Positions 1,336 to 17,100 of a stretch of DNA of 43,588 bases are shown piece after piece. Within the stretch, counting starts at the first letter, position 1. Every line of letters begins with the position of its first letter. A program made the position numbers and the translations under genes. This DNA is from Lenisia limosa (lineage: Eukaryota > Protista > Breviatea): contig LPNZ01003227.1 of assembly GCA_001655205.1 (NCBI GenBank), forward strand, positions 1 through 43,588. The letters are read 5' to 3'. The notes under the pieces were generated by a model that had not been told where the DNA came from, searched no databases, and saw only the letters and a list, made by a program, of their open reading frames with translations.

Positions 1336-2525
1336 GAATCTGTTGCTATTCAGTTTGACTTTACGACACTGAATGCTACAAGAAATGATATTATTTCAAA
1401 GCTTAGCCTCGCAAGACAAAAGGTTTGCTCTCTTTGTCAAGTTGTATTGTCCCATACATACCCACAAGTGATATTTGGAGTCGAAATAATGAACGGAGAT
1501 ATTATGAGGGCTCATCCCGAGTGTGTCAGCATATCATCATTGAGCCTTTCTGTCAATGTTTCACAAGAGTGAATATGAGGTATCATCACTGCGTGGAAAG
1601 TAAATGTTCACACTTGTGAAAGTGACCCAAAAAGTGATATTTGCTGACCTCGTAGCTGAGTGACCTGAAGGTGCCTCTTCGCTCTGTTTATCATGGAAGA
1701 AACTTCTTCAATCTTTTTACACTTCTTCAGAATAAGTTTCCTTACACGTAAGTTAATGAGTTTTTTTTAACTCCAAGTAGGGTCTTTACAGACGGTGGGC
1801 ATTTTCGTCAGATTCACTATCGCACTGATAATATTTTTAATTTTGACGCAGCCGACACCGAATGTGCTGCTAACGGAGTAGGATCAAGAGGGATTAACTA
1901 ACTGTTTCAGGGACGTCTTTATTATCCAAAAGATGGTTCAGAAGTGAACATTGTTATTAATACTGCTGATATTTCCTATGTTGAAGACTTCCAAATTTGG
2001 ACTGGACTCAGAGAAGATGTAAGCAATGCAAGTTGTCTTCTCCCATTATCACTGTCTGGAAAAAGTGATATTAGTGACTTTCTTGGTCAATCTGGTTTGT
2101 CTTTTTTCAATCTATCACAGTTTCTCGATTTATTGTTCCAGGGGGGGCCAGGTGTATGGCAAACTCGTTTTGGTGAATCTAGTTTCCCCCTTTTGTAGGT
2201 TGAGTGAAGTGTGTTGCATTTACCAATTCAGGTGGGATGCAGGAGAACCAAACAATTATGGTTGCAGTGGGGGACTCCGGGAAGACTGTGGAACACTGAA
2301 GAAGAGAAGTGGTAGGGTGCAGATCTTCTGATATCACCTTCAAGGAGTCTTTGTGTTAAATGACGCATGTTGTGACACAGTCATCTCCTTTTTGTGCGAG
2401 CACCGGGTGTCTAATCACCACACCTCGCAAGCCTTCAACGATTACTTCAAATAGCACTAAGATACTTTTATTTATTTATCCTCTGTATCACTGTAGGTAT
2501 TATTCCAACATTTGTAGTATTATGA
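1336..2525 (+). CDS. C-type lectin domain (CTLD) protein, multi-exon; further 5' exons probably lie at about 580-1280 (unresolved)
   Basis: Phase-consistent GT-AG splicing gives ESVAIQFDFTT...ARQK|VPLRSVYHG...FDAADTECAANG|GRLYYPKDGSE...IWTGLRED|GGPGVWQTRFGESSFPLL|WDAGEPNNYGCSGGLREDCGTLKKRS|GVFVLNDACCDTVISFLCEHR. This carries the CTLD hallmarks: WTGL (WIGL-like), W..GEPNN, EDC, LND (WND-like) and terminal C...FLC. The stop position is tentative. Confidence 0.78.
1506..1640 (+). repeat. Dispersed repeat family A, copy 1, inside the 248-nt intron 1423-1670 of the CTLD gene
   Basis: Blocks gagggctcatcccgagtgtg, atgaggtatcatcactgcgtggaaa and gacccaaaaagtgatat match 14992-15095 in the same order. 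Confidence 0.85.
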
Positions 2526-5760: not shown

Positions 5761-8700
5761 ATGGCTTCTATATCTGGAACTAACCATGGGAAGTCAAGAG
5801 GACAGCTTTCTAACTCTCTTGAAGAGGTAAGCCTTTTTACTGAAGTGCGCTGTTCATCAATTGCCGGGTCGACAAAGCTTAATACTCTTTAGGGGATGTT
5901 CTCTGTGCTTTATACTATGGTAAAAGGTGGCTGGGGTTAAGTTAAAATCTCTTCTATTACCTTATCCACGAGGTCACCACGCTTATTAAGTTTATAAACT
6001 TATAATTTCAGATAATCCGCTCTCTTTTCCGCAATTTGTGCTGTACATTTTTGTGAACAGTTTTTTCCAATGGACTGCTTTCTCCTTCAATGGAGTCCCT
6101 TGGGGAATTGGTGAGTATCAGTTGGGAATGTAATTCAGTAACTGTGGCGGTTTTACTTTTCGAGTCTGGCTATGATCATACATGGGCAATATACTTTGAA
6201 ATTATCATGGCAAGCAGTCCCTTCACACTTTTTAGGTGATCGACCGACAAATTTCTTTACCTTCTTCCAATTACCAATTTTTTGGATGTCGAACCAAACC
6301 TCATATCTCTTGACATATTCAGTCGTATTCCTCACCATTGCGGTTTGTGGATCCATTTGAAGACTGAATAACTCTCTAGCTTTCATTTGTATGTGCCTTA
6401 TACGTTATCCAAGCCTTCCAAAAAGATCGGTTTAAATACGTGTTCCCTCTTCGGGCACTGAGAATTCTTGTTTTCATTCTGGTATGATAGCGAATGCTAT
6501 GAACTCACACACAGGTAACCATTCTTTACATCCCGGTTTCTAAGCTGCTGCTGGTTTGTTTAAAGTGTGAGAATCTCAACGGACAACTTGTTATGTGGGT
6601 CATCAATGACCAAAGCTTGACTGACTTAACAGGACAATGTTCCCTGACGCGAAGTGTTGGGAGTGGCCAATGATTGTGCCTGAAATCCTCACAATCGTTA
6701 TCCTCCCGCTCTTCTTTCCTGTCGCTGTACTAGTCCGTCTTGTGTACTTCCAAACAAACCCCAAAAAAGGCAACCCCCTTGCAAGGTCGTCTGGTCGGCT
6801 TGATGCTCAACAGCTTGTCTTTGTGTCCGTCCTGGTTGTTGTCTACACTCTCATTGATGGGTAGGCGTTTGACTAGCCTGGTGGCAATTCTTACCAACAG
6901 TTATTCCACTGAAAAGGCCTGCTTTCTGACTGCTGTTAATCTCCATCTCTTCCGAGCCTACTATAACGCCATGCCTTACTACGTTACCCGAACAAACCGC
7001 ATCAAGTGAGTTGAGTCACATTGGTTAACGCCGCAGACTTGGCTTTCAATTGAGTCAAACAGTGACTTCACTCCTCTCAATTGTGGTCATCCAGTTCAAC
7101 TCCAATGACGAATTCACTTATTGGTATGTGCCTCTTCACTCCTTCTCACTGTAAAAGGTTCGCAGTGCTGTGGCTCTTTTTGCTCTTCCCTTCCCTTTGG
7201 TTTGGTCATAAACTTGCCGACATTCGTTTGAAACGAGCTGAGAAGCGCTGGCTTGGAACAATGCAGTTCTCTAGGGTTGGGTGGTCTAGTTCGTGTTCTC
7301 ATTCTTCAGTTCTACAAAGACCCAACAGTCGTGTCTACAAATGCCGAGTTGGGAGCTGAGGCGGCGACAGAGTCATCGTAGGTCGTCAAATTCGCTTCTG
7401 ACTCCCCAGAGCCGCAACGGAGTCGCCTAGAGAGAACTTGGATTCTCCTGAACAAATGCGGAACCCTTCTTATACCACGCCACTGAGGCAAACCGTTGTA
7501 TGTCATAGTGTGGTCATCTAATCGTTGTTCAGCCTGATGACGCGAGCGTGGCGTCGCACCCGTTTTCGACCCATTCGGCAATGGTGGATCATACGCAAAT
7601 GGTAGACAATGGCTTATGCTTATTGCTTTAGTCCGAGGCGGTAATGGACGGATACATTCAAGACGCCTACACTTCCAGTGATGAATCAGATCATGATCCT
7701 CTCCAGGCTTACCTCGTAGGCCGCCTTTCCCTGTTTCTGATTATCAGGATAATGGTTTTCTTGAGGATGCAGACCCGCCCCCTATCTTCGGCTCCGAAAC
7801 AGACATTGATGTGGCGTGTCGCCTTGTGATTCACCGAATGCGTTTGTTTTGGCAACACTATGCCCTTTAATGTTTTAGGCCCTCCATACATTGCGATGGC
7901 GCTTGCTCATGCCACCGATCTTTACGAAGAAGGGTGCAAGCTCTTCAAGTCGAGTGCTTGGGTCCGTATTATTTATAGTCACTTCCTGGTATGTGGGTAG
8001 ACTATATAAGAAATTCTAAAGATAGCATGCCGTTTTTTTACGCTTCAGGTGTTCTACATGAAGGACCCGCTTGAGGCCAGAGCTCAGGTGAGGAGGAGTG
8101 GCCTGGTTTTATTGACTTTTCCCAGATTTCGGCTGCAAAAACAATGTCTCCGTTTATTGATTGTCGGTTTTTCATCTTCATGAGAGAGAAAGATTGGGCT
8201 CTGGAGAGTTTGGCACATGAGGGTGGAGGTGACATTATCAACAGTGTGGAGTTCCAGTCTAATTATGAACAGGTAAGAGTTAATCTAGACCTGGTGGGTT
8301 TTATCCTTCAAGGCAGTTTCTCAGCACAACGCTGCTCTTTCGAATATTCGCCTCTTTTGGACGACACTCCTTCCGAAGCATGTAGCTTTGGAGCAATTGC
8401 CCGCCCTCGCCCAAAAGATTAACCTCACACAACGGAGGGCTGGAACAATTTGTACGTGTTCTTCACTCTATTTAGTTTTCTGATTTTGTAGACGCCAAAC
8501 TCGTTTCAAATCACCCAAACAATCGCTCTCTTCTCCGCAAATATGCCCACTTCCTTATGTATGTGCAAAATGAGCCAGATGCTGCCGCGTATTACTTCGA
8601 TAAAGCCGAAGAACTGGAGGTTGGCTGTACTGCATTTAGTCATTGTGTAGGACAACGATAGGGAAGGACGAACAAAATCCTTCATCACTCGAGACACAGT

Positions 8701-11700
8701 AATCCGAAAGTAGGGTGATGCTGATGTTGGTGACGCTTTAGATTATCCCGTGCTGGCAGAGACTCACCTGCTATTGACAAGTAAGAAAAGTCGTTTTTGT
8801 GACATTTCAGGTCGGATGGAGAGAGTGTTGGGGACGGTATCCACCAGAGTCACAGTGGACTCAGTGTCAAAGACATGGAAGACAATAACCTTGAGAAGAA
8901 CTCGATGAGAAGCTCTGGACGAAGGTCAAGCGGTAGGAGTGCCTTTTGTTTTGCAGTGTAATTTCGCAGGTGGTACACAGAAGAGCGGTGGTAACACAAG
9001 TCATCAACGGCGCAAGCAGTACCGTGAGAATGTTCTCAGTCGCAAGTCTACAGCAAAACATATTCTTGAACTAACAATTGTCGTCTCCATGGCCCTTCTT
9101 CTTCTTCTTCACGCTCTTTTCTTCATTTTCATTGATATGGAGTATCGATCTCTTTCGGTGAGTGCCTTTTTTTATACAATATCATATTTCTGTTTTTGTT
9201 TTTTATTATTTACCTTGTCTACTATGCAATTACCATTCAGAATGTTTACGATAACATTGAGAAGTCCTGTGACCGCCCCTATTTAGTTCAGAGTCTTGCC
9301 ACACATGTAAGTTCGGTGTAGTTGTTCTGACTTTCAGACCCGTCGAATGGAAACAGCAGCGCTGGCAGGAATGGACAAAAGCGCTCGAGGCCTTCTTGAT
9401 GATGAAGATGAACCCTTGGTGGAGTCCCATTACTCAGTTTCTATTTCTGATCTCTATTCCGACATTCACAAAGAGAGGGATGATTACGTAAGTCAGGTAT
9501 TGCTGTTGTCTCACCACTAGGCTCTGACAAGACGTGAGCTGGAGCCTGGACTGCCAACGTCTGAGAATGAGGGTCTTACACTGCTTATGGCGGGTACTGC
9601 CTTCACTAGAGTGAGTTGCTTCAATCTACTCAAGGTCATTACATATCTTTTTGCAGTAAGTCTCTACTGAAACTAGGATCATAGAGATCCGGCGGTTGTC
9701 TGTACACATAGAAAAACACCCACATATCGATATCGATCTGGTACTTTTTTCTTGCAATTTACCCCCCCCCCCCCNNNNNNNNNNNNNNNNNNNNNNNNNN
9801 NNNNNNNNNNNNNNNNNNNNNNNNNNNNNNNNNNNNNNNNNNNACCCATCGCAACCTTCTTCTTGGCGACAGCTCCACAACAGTAACGTCAAGTGCGATT
9901 GACGCTCTTTGGGAGACTCCTTTTGTTTGGGTATGCATGGTGATGTGTTTATGTCGTCTCATGTTCCAGGTTCGTAAGCCAATTGGGTCATCTACAGCAC
10001 CCACTTTTCCCCTGGGCGACACGAAAACTGGATGGGCTGCGGCCGCCGACCTCGAGCTGCTGAATCTCTGGGACGCAGGACATGAGCTCATCCAACATGT
10101 TGAAGTCGTGGCAGCCCTCCCGCACCCCCTCTCGTCTACTAATGTAACTGCCCGCAGTTTGGAGGCCTGGATGCAGCCAAGCAACTCCCCGCCTTTCTTT
10201 CCTTATTCACCTTCTTCTATTGGGCAACATGCAGACACGTGGTTTACCTTCGCTAACACCAACAACATTACGGACGCTTTCATTGTAGCATCTTATCTCT
10301 ACCAAGATATCGCCGAAGGAGTGAGTCTTTCACGTCATTGATTGTTCTAGATTTTGGACACGGCAGTCACAACCGCTTATGTCGTTTTTACTGTTACCAT
10401 TTTCCTTCTTCTGTCAATCACTATGGTTGTGTTCCGCCCAGTCTTTGCGAAGGTAGAGTTGTATTGTCTTTCTTCTCACCCGCAGATCCACAACGAGAGA
10501 ACCGCCGTGCTGCAGCTTTTCTTGGCTATTCCCAAGAAGGTCGTTTACGTCCTCGGCAAATCCGTGAAGGTGAGCAAGGTGCTGTTTTTTTGACCCGCAG
10601 GACCATGAGTTCAGCGGAGATAGCGACGCCGGTTCTCAAAACGATGAAGACGACATGCAGGATCAGGCTGCTCTACAAAAGGCTCAGGTTTGCTGATGAT
10701 TTTGTTTGTGTGGTTTGGTTAACTTAACAGGAGGCAAGTGGGCTGGTCCAAGAAAGTCAACAAAACAACCAAAAAGACCCACTGCGCCATTTGAACGCCA
10801 AAAACTTCTGCGCTTTCCTTCTCCTTATCCTTGCTGTTATTGGAGCCCTCTTAACTTCACTGTACTTCCACGCGCAGCTCAATGGGATCCACAGGGAAAT
10901 CACTGCAATCGGCCGGCAGCGTGTTGCGGTGTCAAGGTTTGCAAGGGATATTGATGACGCTTCAGAATTGCTATGCTATCGCAGGAGATGATCCGCAATG
11001 AGCGGTCCGCTTGGTTGGAAGAAACTTCAATTGAAGACCTTCTCAAAAACGAAACCGCTCTATTCGATGTATGCTTCTCACTCACTTTTTTACTTCTCAG
11101 AATCTGGTAATGGACTTGAAATGGGGTCTCAACGATCTTCCCGGCTACATTGATCGGTCAACTTCTCTGGATAATCTCCTTTTTGCCACCGGTTTGCCTA
11201 ACGAGGCCATTGACCCCCCAGGTGAATGTGCCGTTTCTGCGTCTTCAAGCATTATTTCGCTATGTAACGACTACGACGGTCTCTTGGCCCTGTCAGACAC
11301 CTTCACACGACACTCCGAGTCTCTCCTCGTCATGATGACCACTGAAAAGGTTGGACTATGGGTTCCTGGGCATGTCTTGCATGCCAACTCAAATTTCTCA
11401 TTGGTGATATTGATATCATTCTAATCCGAGACAACCCCGAATCCTTAACTTTCCAGAACTCAAGCAGATGGTTAACTGACACTTCTGCCCAATTCCCTGG
11501 AATAGCAGCCCGTCTGGACCAATTGATCATCGAATCAGAGATCCTTGCTAGTGGCCTTCTGGAAGGTTAGGCTTTCATTTTCTTCTTAACACTTTAGCAA
11601 TGAGCATCGTTCAATCATACTCGCGGTCGAATGTTTCAATGCATTCAACTTACCAAGGCTTCTGCATTGGCAGTCATTTTGTTTTCATCATTTCAATCTA

Positions 11701-12997
11701 CTGTGAGCACTTTTGGGGGAGGTTTGTCACCTTTCAGTGTTGTTCTTCCGACGTATGTTCCAACGGTTGAGAGACGAGCGGACCTACACCTCCACCATGC
11801 TTCTTATGATTCCGCAGCAGACGATCCAAGAGGTTAGTGCCTCTTCATCAGACGAAATTCATGGTTTAGGTTGCTGAGATTCGGCAATATTTCGAAAACG
11901 GCATGATTAAGGTTGGCTCCACACTCAGTTCAAATATTCTGCCGAACTGCCAATGTTCACGTAACTTTTTAGCAACGTGATGTTGAACAAAAACTGATCG
12001 AGAAAGTTCCCATGTTCGCTAACTCGTCACCAAAGTTTACTTCGGCGCTTGCTTCGAAACTCAAAATCAAAGTAGGAGGACAACAATGGAGGTGTGGCTT
12101 ACTTTTTCAGGTTTATCCTTCGAATATGAACATTATCATATGCTTCAGGTTTATCCTTCGAATATGAACATTATCACATGCTTCAGGTTTATCCTTCGAA
12201 TATGAACATTATCACATGCTTCAGGTTTATCCTTCGAATTTGAACATTATCACATGCTTCAGGTTTATCCTTCGAATATGAACATTATCACATGCTTCAG
12301 GTTTATCCTTCGAATATGAACATTATCACTTGCGGCGAAATCGGAGACGCTATGTACTTCTTGGTCAAGGGCTTTGTTGAAGTGGAATTACCAAATGGAA
12401 TTGGTAAGCGTTTTAGAGTTAGGGACAATAATGTTCCAGTTGTGGCTACTATGCAGCCTGGAGCCTTCTTCGGAGAAATCGCCTTGTTGACAGGGTCTCC
12501 TCGAACGGCCACAATCCGAACAAAAATGATCAGTGACGTGTTGGTGTTGTCGCGCTCTCACTTTAACAAAGTGCTCAAGAAGTTCCCACAGCATCATGAA
12601 GGTTTGTTTCATACTGAAAGTTATGTTTTGACCTCTGCAGAGTTCACTCAAATTGCAAATGAGTACAAAATCAGAGACATCAAGAAGAAGGAAGAGGAAG
12701 ACAAAAAGAAACAGGATGCAGAAGAAAAACGACTGAAAGAAGAGCAGGAAAGAGAAGAGTTGAAGAAAAAGCATGAAGAAGAGAGGGCTGCCCAGGGTCT
12801 CCCCCCGAAGAAGGCAACAATCGGTGGAGAAGTAGGTCCTTTTGGTGCTGGTCCAAATGACGCTCAAGGTTGAGATCCCGATCTCCCCAAGCATGACTCC
12901 AGTTCCTTCTGCTGTCAATGTGGACAACCAGGAGGATTTCAGCGAAGAAGAAGAAATCGAAGATGACAACGATGAGGAATATGAGGAGGAAGAGTAG
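5761..12997 (+). CDS. TmcB/TmcC (tiny macrocysts)-like large multipass membrane protein with a C-terminal cyclic-nucleotide-binding domain
   Basis: Spliced model: MASISGT...LEE|GMFSVLYTM; VFPLRALR; LYIPVSKLLLVCLKC; FPDAKCW; NPLARSSGRLD; MPYYVTRTN; SETDIDVACRL; YEEGCKLFKSSAWVRIIYSHFL; DCRFFIFMREK; VEFQSNYE; IRLFWTTLL; HPNNRSLLRKYAHFL; ERTAVLQLFLAIPKKVV; RDERTYTSTMLLMIP. These match my recollection of the TmcB-like family pattern. A CNBD follows (KVPMF...GEIGDAMYFLVKGFVEV...GAFFGEIALLTGSPRTATI) with a KE-rich and acidic tail. Over 25 short introns; one N-gap. Confidence 0.82.
12106..12333 (+). repeat. Tandem array of 6 x 38 bp spanning an intron/exon junction
   Basis: Unit ttcaggtttatccttcgaatatgaacattatcac(a/t)tgc, period 38. 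Single substitutions in copies 1 and 4; the last copy (cacttgc) is the coding one. Confidence 0.97.
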
Positions 12998-14129: not shown

Positions 14130-17100
14130 CTACACTACTTTTTCTTCTCTCTTGGCTTGCTGGGTTTCTTCTCCTTCTGTTTCTCCTTTTCCTCCTCTTC
14201 ACTGTCGTCACTCTCTTCTTCATCATCCCTGAGAAAGTTATGCGAAAGTAAAGAACCTACGATTCCCCTTCTCCTCCTGAAGGCAATTTCTTCGGCTTGG
14301 CTTTAGTTTTTTTCTTAATAGTGCTGTCGCTGAAGTGTGTTGCATGGGAAGTTGAATTGTACCTGAAAGGATGAGTGCTTAGAACTGATCATCTTACGTT
14401 CTCGTAAGCTTGGATTTGACAGCTGTTTTGATGGCAGGCTTGGCCGTCTAAAGATTAATCCCTCTGACAGATTTAACAAACTTGTGACAGTCCCACAGCA
14501 GAGAAATCTGTTTTCCACTGAGTCAATTCGATGATTTGGTCCAAATGTTCCCTTGTCAAGTCATACTTCTCCAAAAGGCGCACCACTTCTGCAACACCAT
14601 CCTGAACTTTGAGCAGCCCGTCATTGTCCCTACCTTCTCATTTTGCTCCAGAGGCTCTGTTAGTTCCTTACAGAGTGTGGGAAGGAAGTTTCGAGTTGCT
14701 TCAACTGAATAGTTAACAGAAAAAAGTCCTCACCTCCTGGAGGAAAATTGCAGGAGGACCTGAGACGATGGCTGATGTCCTGGAGTATTCTCTCATTCTT
14801 GTTCTTCGTTGATAACTTGCCAAAGAAGCTTGGGAATTGTACACGACCTCCTTGAACATACCCTGAAATAATTCGACCAGGTGCTGCGCATGACATCACC
14901 TGAATCGTCATCAAGTACTTGTTAACCCATATCCACTGGGGTACCATCATATGACCGACTTTGACGTCGAAATGATGAACTAAATTAATACGAGGGTTCA
15001 TCCCGAGTGTGCGGGCGAGGCGTGTCCGTCAATTATCATACGAGTGGTTATGAGATATCATATCAATGCGTGGAAAATGATCCAAAAAGTGATATGATGT
15101 ACCATCACTCTAGTCCATAATCTCCTCAAGAGCAAACAATACAGTGAGGTTTACAAAATTTATACTACACACTTACTATATGTCATACAATAATTAATTT
15201 ACCTCCAAAAAAATGAAATCAAACAAACAGCATGGGAAGGCATGAGGCTGAAGTTCATTTGTTGGCGCATTGTGTTGTCGATTCGGGCACCACATAAGGC
15301 ATATTCTTGAGCCTGATAATGAGTAGTTACCCATTTGCACCGTCACTCAAGGACCAACCTGGATGAGTAGTTCGTTTCGCTGGTTTTCGTCACGACAGCC
15401 CGACGGCATCACCTTTGTCAAGTTCTCCTGAAACATATGAGAAGCAAAACCCTCGTAAAAGCCACTCCCCTCGAGACCCTCGAGACCCACGGTGACAAAG
15501 AGCGGGATCATGGAGTTGTCCACGAAGTACGCGTCCATCAGCGCATCGATCGTCTGGGGCCCGCGACTTGACCATTAAAATTGCGTGGCTCTTACCCTTG
15601 AAGAATTCTATCAACAGCAGGGAAGACCGTAAGGAACTCGTTTTTCTTGTTGGTCTCCAATTTGGCTTGTACATCATCGTAGCCCATTTTCGAAGAAGAC
15701 ACGCGCCACATTTGCATCATATTCAAGGCCTGGCGGATATCGGCTGAACCGTGACGTTTAATATAACAAACCATTAGAGGCGGTGACAATAGTCTCCAGC
15801 GCATTGTCATCGACTGAAAGGCCTTCGTTGTTGGCCACTTCTCTCAGTCGTCTTGCAATCACTACAGCTGGCGTTCTTTGATGTAATTCAACAGCGTGGC
15901 CAACCTTTGGAATTTCAGCTCCAAGCTAACCCCAAGAAGAGGTCTAAGTTTTGGACCAGTGTCATTGGCAATGCAGATAACAGGAACCTGGGGGTGAGTT
16001 TTAGCGAAGGGCAGTACCTTTGATGCTTTAATAATCTGCAGCAATTCTTTCATTCCTCCTCGATCTTGATTTCCACTCATTCCATCAACTTCGTCCATTA
16101 TAACAAGTGTCTTTTTCTAAAACAATATTAAGCAAAAAGAAACCCTCCAAAATCTCATTAGACTCACCTTTTCCTTATTCGGTCCTGAACTTCCATAGAA
16201 CTCAAGCATTGAACGCGAAGCTGTCATTTCAGACACCTGTCGTCAGAAATGACATAGCATAATTGGCCTACGATTTGTTTGAGCGAAGCCGTGCTACGAG
16301 TATCACTTGCGTTGAGCTCACGAGGGTCATATCCACACTCCACGGCAATGAGTTTCGCTGTTGTTGTTTTACCAATACCGGGCGGTCCATGAATAAGTGC
16401 TGCTTGGAACGGGCCCGTTTTGGCCATTTTGCCTAGTGGTTTTAGTTACGGAGCAGATGACTCACCTTTTGCTTCGGCTGTGTAGGTGGACTTCCCCTTT
16501 TGCCAGCCTCTGATCCATTCTTTGAGCAACTTGACCTTGCCAGGGTTACCGATCACGTCAGAAGCCTTGGTTGGTGCATAACGATCCGTCCACAAACCAG
16601 CTAAAACGGGTAAATCCAGAAATCAGTACCTTCAGGGTTGCCTGGTTTGGCCTTCTTTCCAGTTGACTCAAATTGAGCTGTTGGAGATGGCGCAGTCTGT
16701 GAAGTAACTTTCTGTAACACAGCTGTTCATTCCCCAAAAATATCGCCCAAGCCCCGCCTGATTAGACACAGGAACAAGCCCCACCTGATTAGACACAGGA
16801 ACAAATGCCCTGTTTTGGAACCTGGATTCATGAGGAGGATGAAAGAGAAGTCGTGGCAAAAACATCGTCAAAAGTGCCCTTACTTAGCAAAAGAGGAAAC
16901 CGGGGTAGAGGATGAAGATGGGGTAGCGGAGGGGGTGGAGGGGGTGCCCGCTGGCTTTGCGGTGGTAGGCCTAAAGATTAAACAGGTCACAGGATAGCCC
17001 TACGCTTGATTGGGAAAATGGTGCTGAATATTGCCTAAAATAGTGAAAAAAACACGACAAAGAAGGATTACCCTTGGACTTGGAGATGACCAGTTGGAAA

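Follow-up and report, generated by a model that had tools for sequence, protein, structure and literature searches.

When every unit of a tandem array that covers a splice acceptor begins with GT and ends with AG, are the units nascent introns, or has a minisatellite simply lengthened an intron that was already there? This question is raised by a locus in a 43,588-nt stretch of Lenisia limosa DNA (the whole stretch analyzed, referred to below as the window). Tandem Repeats Finder (TRF) places an array at positions 12106-12333, with a period of 38, 6.0 copies, 97% matches, no indels, and a score of 435; the second-ranked array of the 43.6-kb window scores only 107. The unit consists of TTCAG, which is the final 5 nt of an intron, and of the 33 nt that open the next exon. 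An earlier note on this DNA had described exactly this arrangement, six 38-nt copies of the acceptor plus the first 33 exon nucleotides, as well as five consecutive units, 12111-12148 through 12263-12300, that start with GT and end with CAG; direct reading of the sequence bears out both statements. The array has the head-to-tail copies, the unit length of 10 to 100 bp, and the high identity of a minisatellite. It also presents TTCAG|GTTTAT six times, juxtaposing an acceptor with a donor (AG|GT) as in a recursive splice site, and contains a tandem duplicate with AGGT, as expected for intron gain by AGGT duplication.

A copy-by-copy table shows that copies 2, 3, and 5 are identical, whereas copy 1 carries C>T at unit position 34 (Thr>Ile in the exon frame), copy 4 carries A>T at unit position 21 (Met>Leu), and copy 6, the coding copy, carries a synonymous A>T at unit position 35 (ACA/ACT, Thr). 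The copy-specific substitutions thus number three rather than the two counted earlier. The table shows no microhomology at either edge of the array, and the locus is single-copy across the 49-Mb assembly of 11,727 contigs. The features of the region are as follows.

11973..12071, plus strand: upstream exon (QRDVEQKLIEKVPMFANSSPKFTSALASKLKIK), encoding the helix that precedes the beta-roll of the cyclic-nucleotide-binding domain (CNBD) (forced open-frame model, translation).
12072..12110, plus strand: ancestral phase-0 intron of 39 nt, GTAGGA...CTTAC...TTCAG, divisible by three and stop-free (model, intron scoring).
12098..12102, plus strand: branch-like CTTAC, whose A lies 9 nt from the proximal AG; outside the repeated unit (motif scan).
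12106..12333, plus strand: tandem array, 6.0 copies of 38 nt (TRF and copy table).
12111..12300, plus strand: five extra GT...CAG units, 190 nt in total, that would have to be missing from any CNBD-coding mRNA (open reading frames, forced open-frame model).
12165..12167, plus strand: TGA met after the proximal acceptor at 12110 (open reading frame 12012..12167, translation).
12301..12403, plus strand: exon opening with VYPSNMNIITCGEIGDAMYF..., encoding the first CNBD strands (PF00027 match).
12404..12439, plus strand: next intron, 36 nt, GTAAGC...TTCCAG (open-frame model, intron set).
12440..12601, plus strand: exon with the phosphate-binding cassette FFGEIALLTGSPRTATI (open reading frame, PF00027 match, model).

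The downstream exons match the cNMP_binding domain (Pfam ID PF00027) with 60.3 bits against a cut-off of 27.5 (E value, 1.8e-16), profile position 4 falling on residue 2 of the exon, and their FGE...PRTAT cassette is intact. A path forced to remain open over 9970-12994 requires 15 or 16 introns and, at the array, removes 12072-12300 (229 nt), so that an upstream exon ending in ...ASKLKIK is joined to one starting with VYPSNMNIITCGE. In the homologue P0023, the final residue of the upstream exon corresponds to residue 543 and residue 2 of the downstream exon to residue 545; residues 543 and 544/545 flank the join, and the 12071/12301 junction is therefore gap-free. In both the domain and the homologue searches, the exons were taken separately and by reference, not as a joined protein. 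On this model, a homologue-consistent CNBD is predicted only when all of 12072-12300 (229 nt) is removed, in agreement with the earlier claim that a full CNBD needs all 190 nt of extra units out. Use of an earlier acceptor leads to ...VYPSNMNII(I/T)CFRFILRI, followed by TGA (12165-12167 for the proximal site) or its equivalent. Two open reading frames, 12012..12167 and 12086..12205, indeed end in ...CFRFILRI*, as would be expected if the retention of any extra copy caused an early stop, and the list of open reading frames contains no frame, on either strand, that is open across the array.

The splicing signals of the gene were derived from a reference set of 36 hand-curated introns (window positions 5762-12997), with the array excluded. 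Their median length is 35 nt, most being 29 to 43 nt long and four 60 to 107 nt; for this gene at least, 38-nt units are indeed of the usual intron size. The donors are GT with variable positions +3 and +4 and with G at +5 in 34 of the 36, a count that is not fully independent because the set was picked partly by eye and by signal; in a donor-neutral run, +5 G was still found in 26 of 38 predicted introns. All 36 introns end in AG. A motif scan found T[AGT]A[CT] 5 to 20 nt from the 3' end, usually at 8 nt, in 28 of them (YTRAY in 17), while the tails of the remaining eight, read by eye, carry TCAC or TCAT at 7 to 9 nt; the same reading places TNAY, with its A 7 to 12 nt from the 3' end, in every member of the set. 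The spacing between branch and acceptor is unusually tight in these introns. None of the 36 has an AG between the branch-like motif and the 3' end, and the few long ones have no internal AG with a good 3' score, which suggests that competing acceptors are normally selected against. From these sequences, the acceptor used appears to be the first AG to follow the closely placed branch site.

Two further observations concern the introns of this gene. The introns that flank the CNBD exons, 12072-12110, 12404-12439, and 12602-12640 (39, 36, and 39 nt), are all stop-free and divisible by three and would therefore keep the frame if retained; such lengths occur in 11 of the 36 curated introns. Within a presumed exon, positions 11192-11221 contain an in-frame 30-nt GTTTGC...CCCCCAG with a branch-like motif and a score of 15.9 bits, higher than that of most real introns, which may be an unrecognized or optional intron.

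Arrays of this kind are not confined to the CNBD gene. Two more were found at acceptors in genes that each have one locus in the assembly, those for bystin and TOR.

C6340 (L029), 1477-1644, minus strand: bystin array, 24 nt x 8.1, 96% identical (TRF).
C9127 (L032), 1097-1283: TOR array, about 48 nt x about 4.5, 91% identical with indels (TRF).

The bystin unit combines 9 nt of intron with 15 nt of exon, ACCCCACAG being the intron end and TTGAACTACCATCTC the exon start, and contains no GT at all. The array adds seven copies of the acceptor and exon start, which are in frame and coding, (LNYHLTPQ)n, whereas bystin homologues have a contiguous ...QENKKLNFHLY... with no insert at this site; the composite intron measures 199 nt (L029, 1477-1675). 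A public ENA gene call from a 15.3-kb contig (P0166) reproduces this array with the same copies and variants, and since that contig has sequence at the G000 gap, it appears to represent a second assembly that agrees with the first. In the TOR gene, four decaying copies of the opening 22 nt of the FRB exon lie ahead of it, each unit consisting of these 22 nt and a 26-nt pyrimidine-rich tail that ends in TAG or CAG. The units begin with AT, earlier acceptors lead to TAA, and the composite intron is 230 nt long (L032, 1054-1283). The tail is unlike the 3' end of the upstream intron, so that the build is more complex than that of a simple junction duplicate. The TOR units also contain an internal 30-nt GTTCAT...TAG, and a model with an 18-nt micro-exon and a 30-nt intron can be drawn for three of the four.

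Minisatellites at acceptors, including the present array and those of bystin and TOR, are thus a recurring class in this genome. Because the bystin units lack GT and the TOR units start with AT, arrays of this class cannot depend on the removal of GT...AG micro-introns. In the present, bystin, and TOR arrays, the intron contributes 5, 9, and 26 nt to each unit, respectively, from which the boundaries look arbitrary; an origin of the units at the branch point was considered and rejected on the same figures. About 60 kb of randomly drawn contigs yielded more minisatellites in TRF, most of them with periods divisible by three.

Two other repeats touch on the same subject. A random sample contig, C2900 (L016), carries at 7004-7316, in a nucleotide-cyclase-like gene, a 75-nt x 4.2 array (96% identical) that covers the end of an exon (...LYKVGE) as well as the donor, mirroring the acceptor arrays on the donor side. 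Within the window, 16748-16804 is a 27-nt x 2.1 duplicate whose minus strand, CAG|GTGGGGCTTGTTCCTGTGTCTAATCAG|GCGGGG..., shows a tandemly copied intron-like unit with the second GT replaced by GC.

The explanation to which we give somewhat better than an even chance is that the array is a real, young minisatellite at a splice junction and that the gene still yields some correct mRNA, whichever route is used. A 38-bp segment over an existing intron-exon boundary, with 5 nt of intron and 33 nt of exon, would have been duplicated head to tail and then multiplied to six copies, most likely via replication slippage or unequal exchange, converting a 39-nt phase-0 intron into a 229-nt stretch with six identical TTCAG|G acceptors. 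Only via the last acceptor, or through the stepwise loss of the five extra units, could the ancestral mRNA and a complete C-terminal CNBD then be obtained, and the cell would presumably still be producing some of this mRNA. Transcripts joined at earlier acceptors would meet a premature stop ahead of additional introns and either be lost or be translated into a protein without the CNBD. That these arrays are real DNA of different ages can be argued from the decay of the TOR copies and from the copy-specific changes in all three arrays.

Such a history does not involve the birth of an intron, as had been proposed earlier. On contig C8906, a paralogue is interrupted by an intron at this very codon and has an exon that opens ...CCCAG|GTG TAC GGA (VYGINANIIKIGDQGDAMFF), and in the CNBD gene itself a 39-nt intron lies directly upstream of the array, where the appearance of an intron at a new position would have required a formerly continuous exon. 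The AG|GT is an existing intron-exon boundary common to the paralogue, which means that no new intron position was created and that an old intron was lengthened. A search for decayed junction copies in the other 35 introns of the gene gave one weak donor-side match and none on the acceptor side. The exon after the array opens with a conserved Val codon, GTT. Exons beginning with GT number 7 of 36 in this gene, where GT is the most frequent opening dinucleotide, so that units beginning with GT are a coincidence to be expected; in each unit, the initial GT belongs to this Val codon and is probably incidental.

Against productive splicing stand the gene's own rules, under which the proximal acceptor should be favored: the ancestral intron 12072-12110, with CTTAC at 9 nt, has a 3' score of 11.8 bits, above those of 35 of the 36 curated introns. 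On the gene's grammar, the default product is expected to be truncated or subject to NMD, and productive splicing is an assumption of the preferred explanation. The main alternative is accordingly a truncating allele, in which the proximal acceptor is used, the units are retained, and translation stops at 12165-12167, giving an NMD target or a membrane protein without the CNBD, in a gene that may be recently disabled or in a diploid that carries the array on one allele. This alternative, which we hold to be unlikely, draws on the second-best 3' score in the gene at the proximal acceptor, the branch-like motif of which is preserved, and on the absence from all 36 real introns of an AG past the branch-like motif or of a good internal acceptor. 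RNA structure that would hide the early acceptors was also considered and rejected, as the fold is no better than those of shuffled sequences (z = +0.73).

The truncating allele is also in keeping with the absence of a protein with this CNBD from the public collections searched. With the CNBD stretch as the query, a word-index search yielded no protein of more than 45% identity, and the best match of this stretch in a library of 1.84 billion representative proteins had 40% identity, with nothing near-identical; the junction-spanning open frame had zero matches in a word search of proteins, and zero metagenome contigs matched the exact exon pattern. This absence is weak evidence, however, because no part of the gene was found in the protein collections. 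The CNBD exons, moreover, are undecayed, and the only change in the last copy is synonymous, but visible decay may not be expected yet if the array is very young. Similar arrays occur in the bystin and TOR genes, each of which has a single match in the assembly and must be expressed correctly from some allele. This comparison suggests either that a distal acceptor can win or that crippled alleles of a diploid are what the assembly shows; in bystin and TOR, the arrays could lie on one such allele. Only at the present locus would stepwise removal of the units offer a further route.

The second alternative is the one proposed in the earlier note, according to which each 38-nt unit is itself an intron and the 190 nt are removed unit by unit, either recursively or as back-to-back introns with zero-length exons, AG|GT being restored each time. 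Part of this proposal stands. The units are of modal intron length, and their 3' signal of 7.0 bits equals the median of the real introns. In each of them, the A of TCAC (TCAT in copy 1) lies 10 nt from the AG, within the range of real introns. In its repeat context, the donor CAG|GTTTATCC scores 4.9 bits, outscoring 7 of the 36 real donors; among decoy GTs, 92% score lower and 8% reach this value. The 5' and 3' splice sites combined reach 11.9 bits, which is more than 14 of the 36 real introns and all but one of 92 exonic GT..AG decoys of 25 to 45 nt attain. Judged by its signals, then, a 38-nt unit is a plausible but weak intron. Segmental duplication of AGGT, in addition, has been shown to create a spliceable intron in cells (PMC3265369).

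The weak part is the donor. GTTTAT lacks the +5 G, and once the upstream intron is gone, the donor stands in the context AAA|GTTTATCC (AAA|GTTTAT), where it scores 2.5 bits, below 34 of the 36 real donors. The regenerated donor is thus far from the consensus of the organism to which a recursive splice site would conform, and no very long intron is being subdivided, the segments being 38 nt and the whole stretch 229 nt. The same GTTTAT also has to stay unspliced in the mature mRNA. The bystin units, with no GT, show that the genome has arrays for which there is no unit-removal route, and the frequency of GT-initial exons and the Val codon make the GT of each unit unremarkable. Known ratchet points have strong donors and lie in very long introns (PMC8605326; bioRxiv 10.1101/006163), and in the sole experimental re-enactment of AGGT duplication, just 6 to 16% of transcripts were spliced (PMC3265369). 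The signals alone do not decide the micro-intron reading either way, and with all these points considered it appears quite improbable.

We also regard as very unlikely an assembly artefact, in which the true genome would have a single copy, or at any rate fewer copies, and the assembler or a gap-filling step would have inflated the repeat. In favor of an artefact, the assembly is broken into 11,727 contigs and the window contains many N gaps; the identity of copies 2 and 3 makes the copy number hinge on reads that bridge about 100 nt between variant anchors; and the composite introns are suspiciously alike (229, 199, and 230 nt), which may reflect a ceiling of assembly resolution and not biology. 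Against it, there are three copy-specific substitutions here, the TOR array shows both decay and indels, the gene call from the longer, gap-free ENA contig has an identical bystin array, and minisatellites are common in unselected contigs of the genome. Short-read assemblers usually collapse tandem repeats and do not expand them. The N runs of the assembly (9764-9843 in the window and others in L023, L029, and L032) are regularly flanked on one side by a C or G homopolymer, which points to sequencing or assembly failure at homopolymers.

Should the array be real and the gene functional, as the young-minisatellite explanation holds, six identical acceptors face a spliceosome that is used to introns of about 35 nt, in which the branch site keeps a set distance of 7 to 11 nt to the AG, and the junctions used at the array would reveal whether a 3' splice site is chosen by proximity, as the last copy, or stepwise. 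Together with the bystin and TOR arrays, the locus would then illustrate one concrete way for tiny introns to lengthen. If the proximal site is used, the array is merely a fresh disabling mutation of a non-essential sensor domain. One could go further and suppose that a protist with tiny introns routinely resolves identical tandem acceptors to the correct message, through the distal-most copy or unit by unit, that minisatellites at junctions are nearly neutral and allow introns of 30 to 40 nt to grow to about 200 nt, and that the units of the present array have become self-contained introns separated by zero-length exons; this larger picture is speculative, and its chances seem rather poor.

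Among the systems with which this locus can be compared, it shares the AG|GT geometry with both AGGT-mediated intron gain and recursive splicing, and it lacks their other defining features. In the creation of introns by AGGT duplication (the Rogers model; Hellsten et al. 2011, PMC3265369; PMC4974935), the GT in one copy and the AG in the next bracket one unit, the removal of which would restore the original message, as it would here. A spliceable intron can be made in this way, with an efficiency of 6 to 16% in the published re-enactment (PMC3265369), and an intron in a potato RdRp gene is another case of creation through tandem duplication of an AGGT segment (PMC4974935). In those cases, however, the AGGT lies within an exon, a new intron position results, and there are two copies, whereas here the AG|GT is an existing boundary and there are six copies, with 38-nt units that are candidate introns.

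In recursive splicing, strong donors are regenerated inside very long introns (PMC8605326; bioRxiv 10.1101/006163). The Drosophila ratchet points with zero-nucleotide exons (PMC8605326; bioRxiv 10.1101/006163; PMC6110457) resemble the present units in having AG|GT, from which the upstream exon can be spliced again using the regenerated donor. Unlike the ratchet points, which combine strong donors with introns of many kilobases, the array has a weak GTTTAT without +5 G and segments of only 38 nt, and its motif arose by the copying of an exon start.

Tandem alternative acceptors, both of the NAGNAG type and in the form of larger duplicated 3' splice sites, provide a further parallel, as equivalent acceptors compete for one donor. 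The spacing of 38 nt, the six copies, and the identical flanks set the present array apart from NAGNAG-type acceptors, and since 38 is not divisible by three, all acceptors except the last are out of frame. Finally, the locus has the head-to-tail 38-nt copies, 97% identity, and sporadic variants of a minisatellite or VNTR within a gene, and comparable arrays are frequent in this genome. It differs from the usual genic minisatellite in that its unit straddles an acceptor, so that a change in copy number alters the set of competing splice sites and not a protein repeat.
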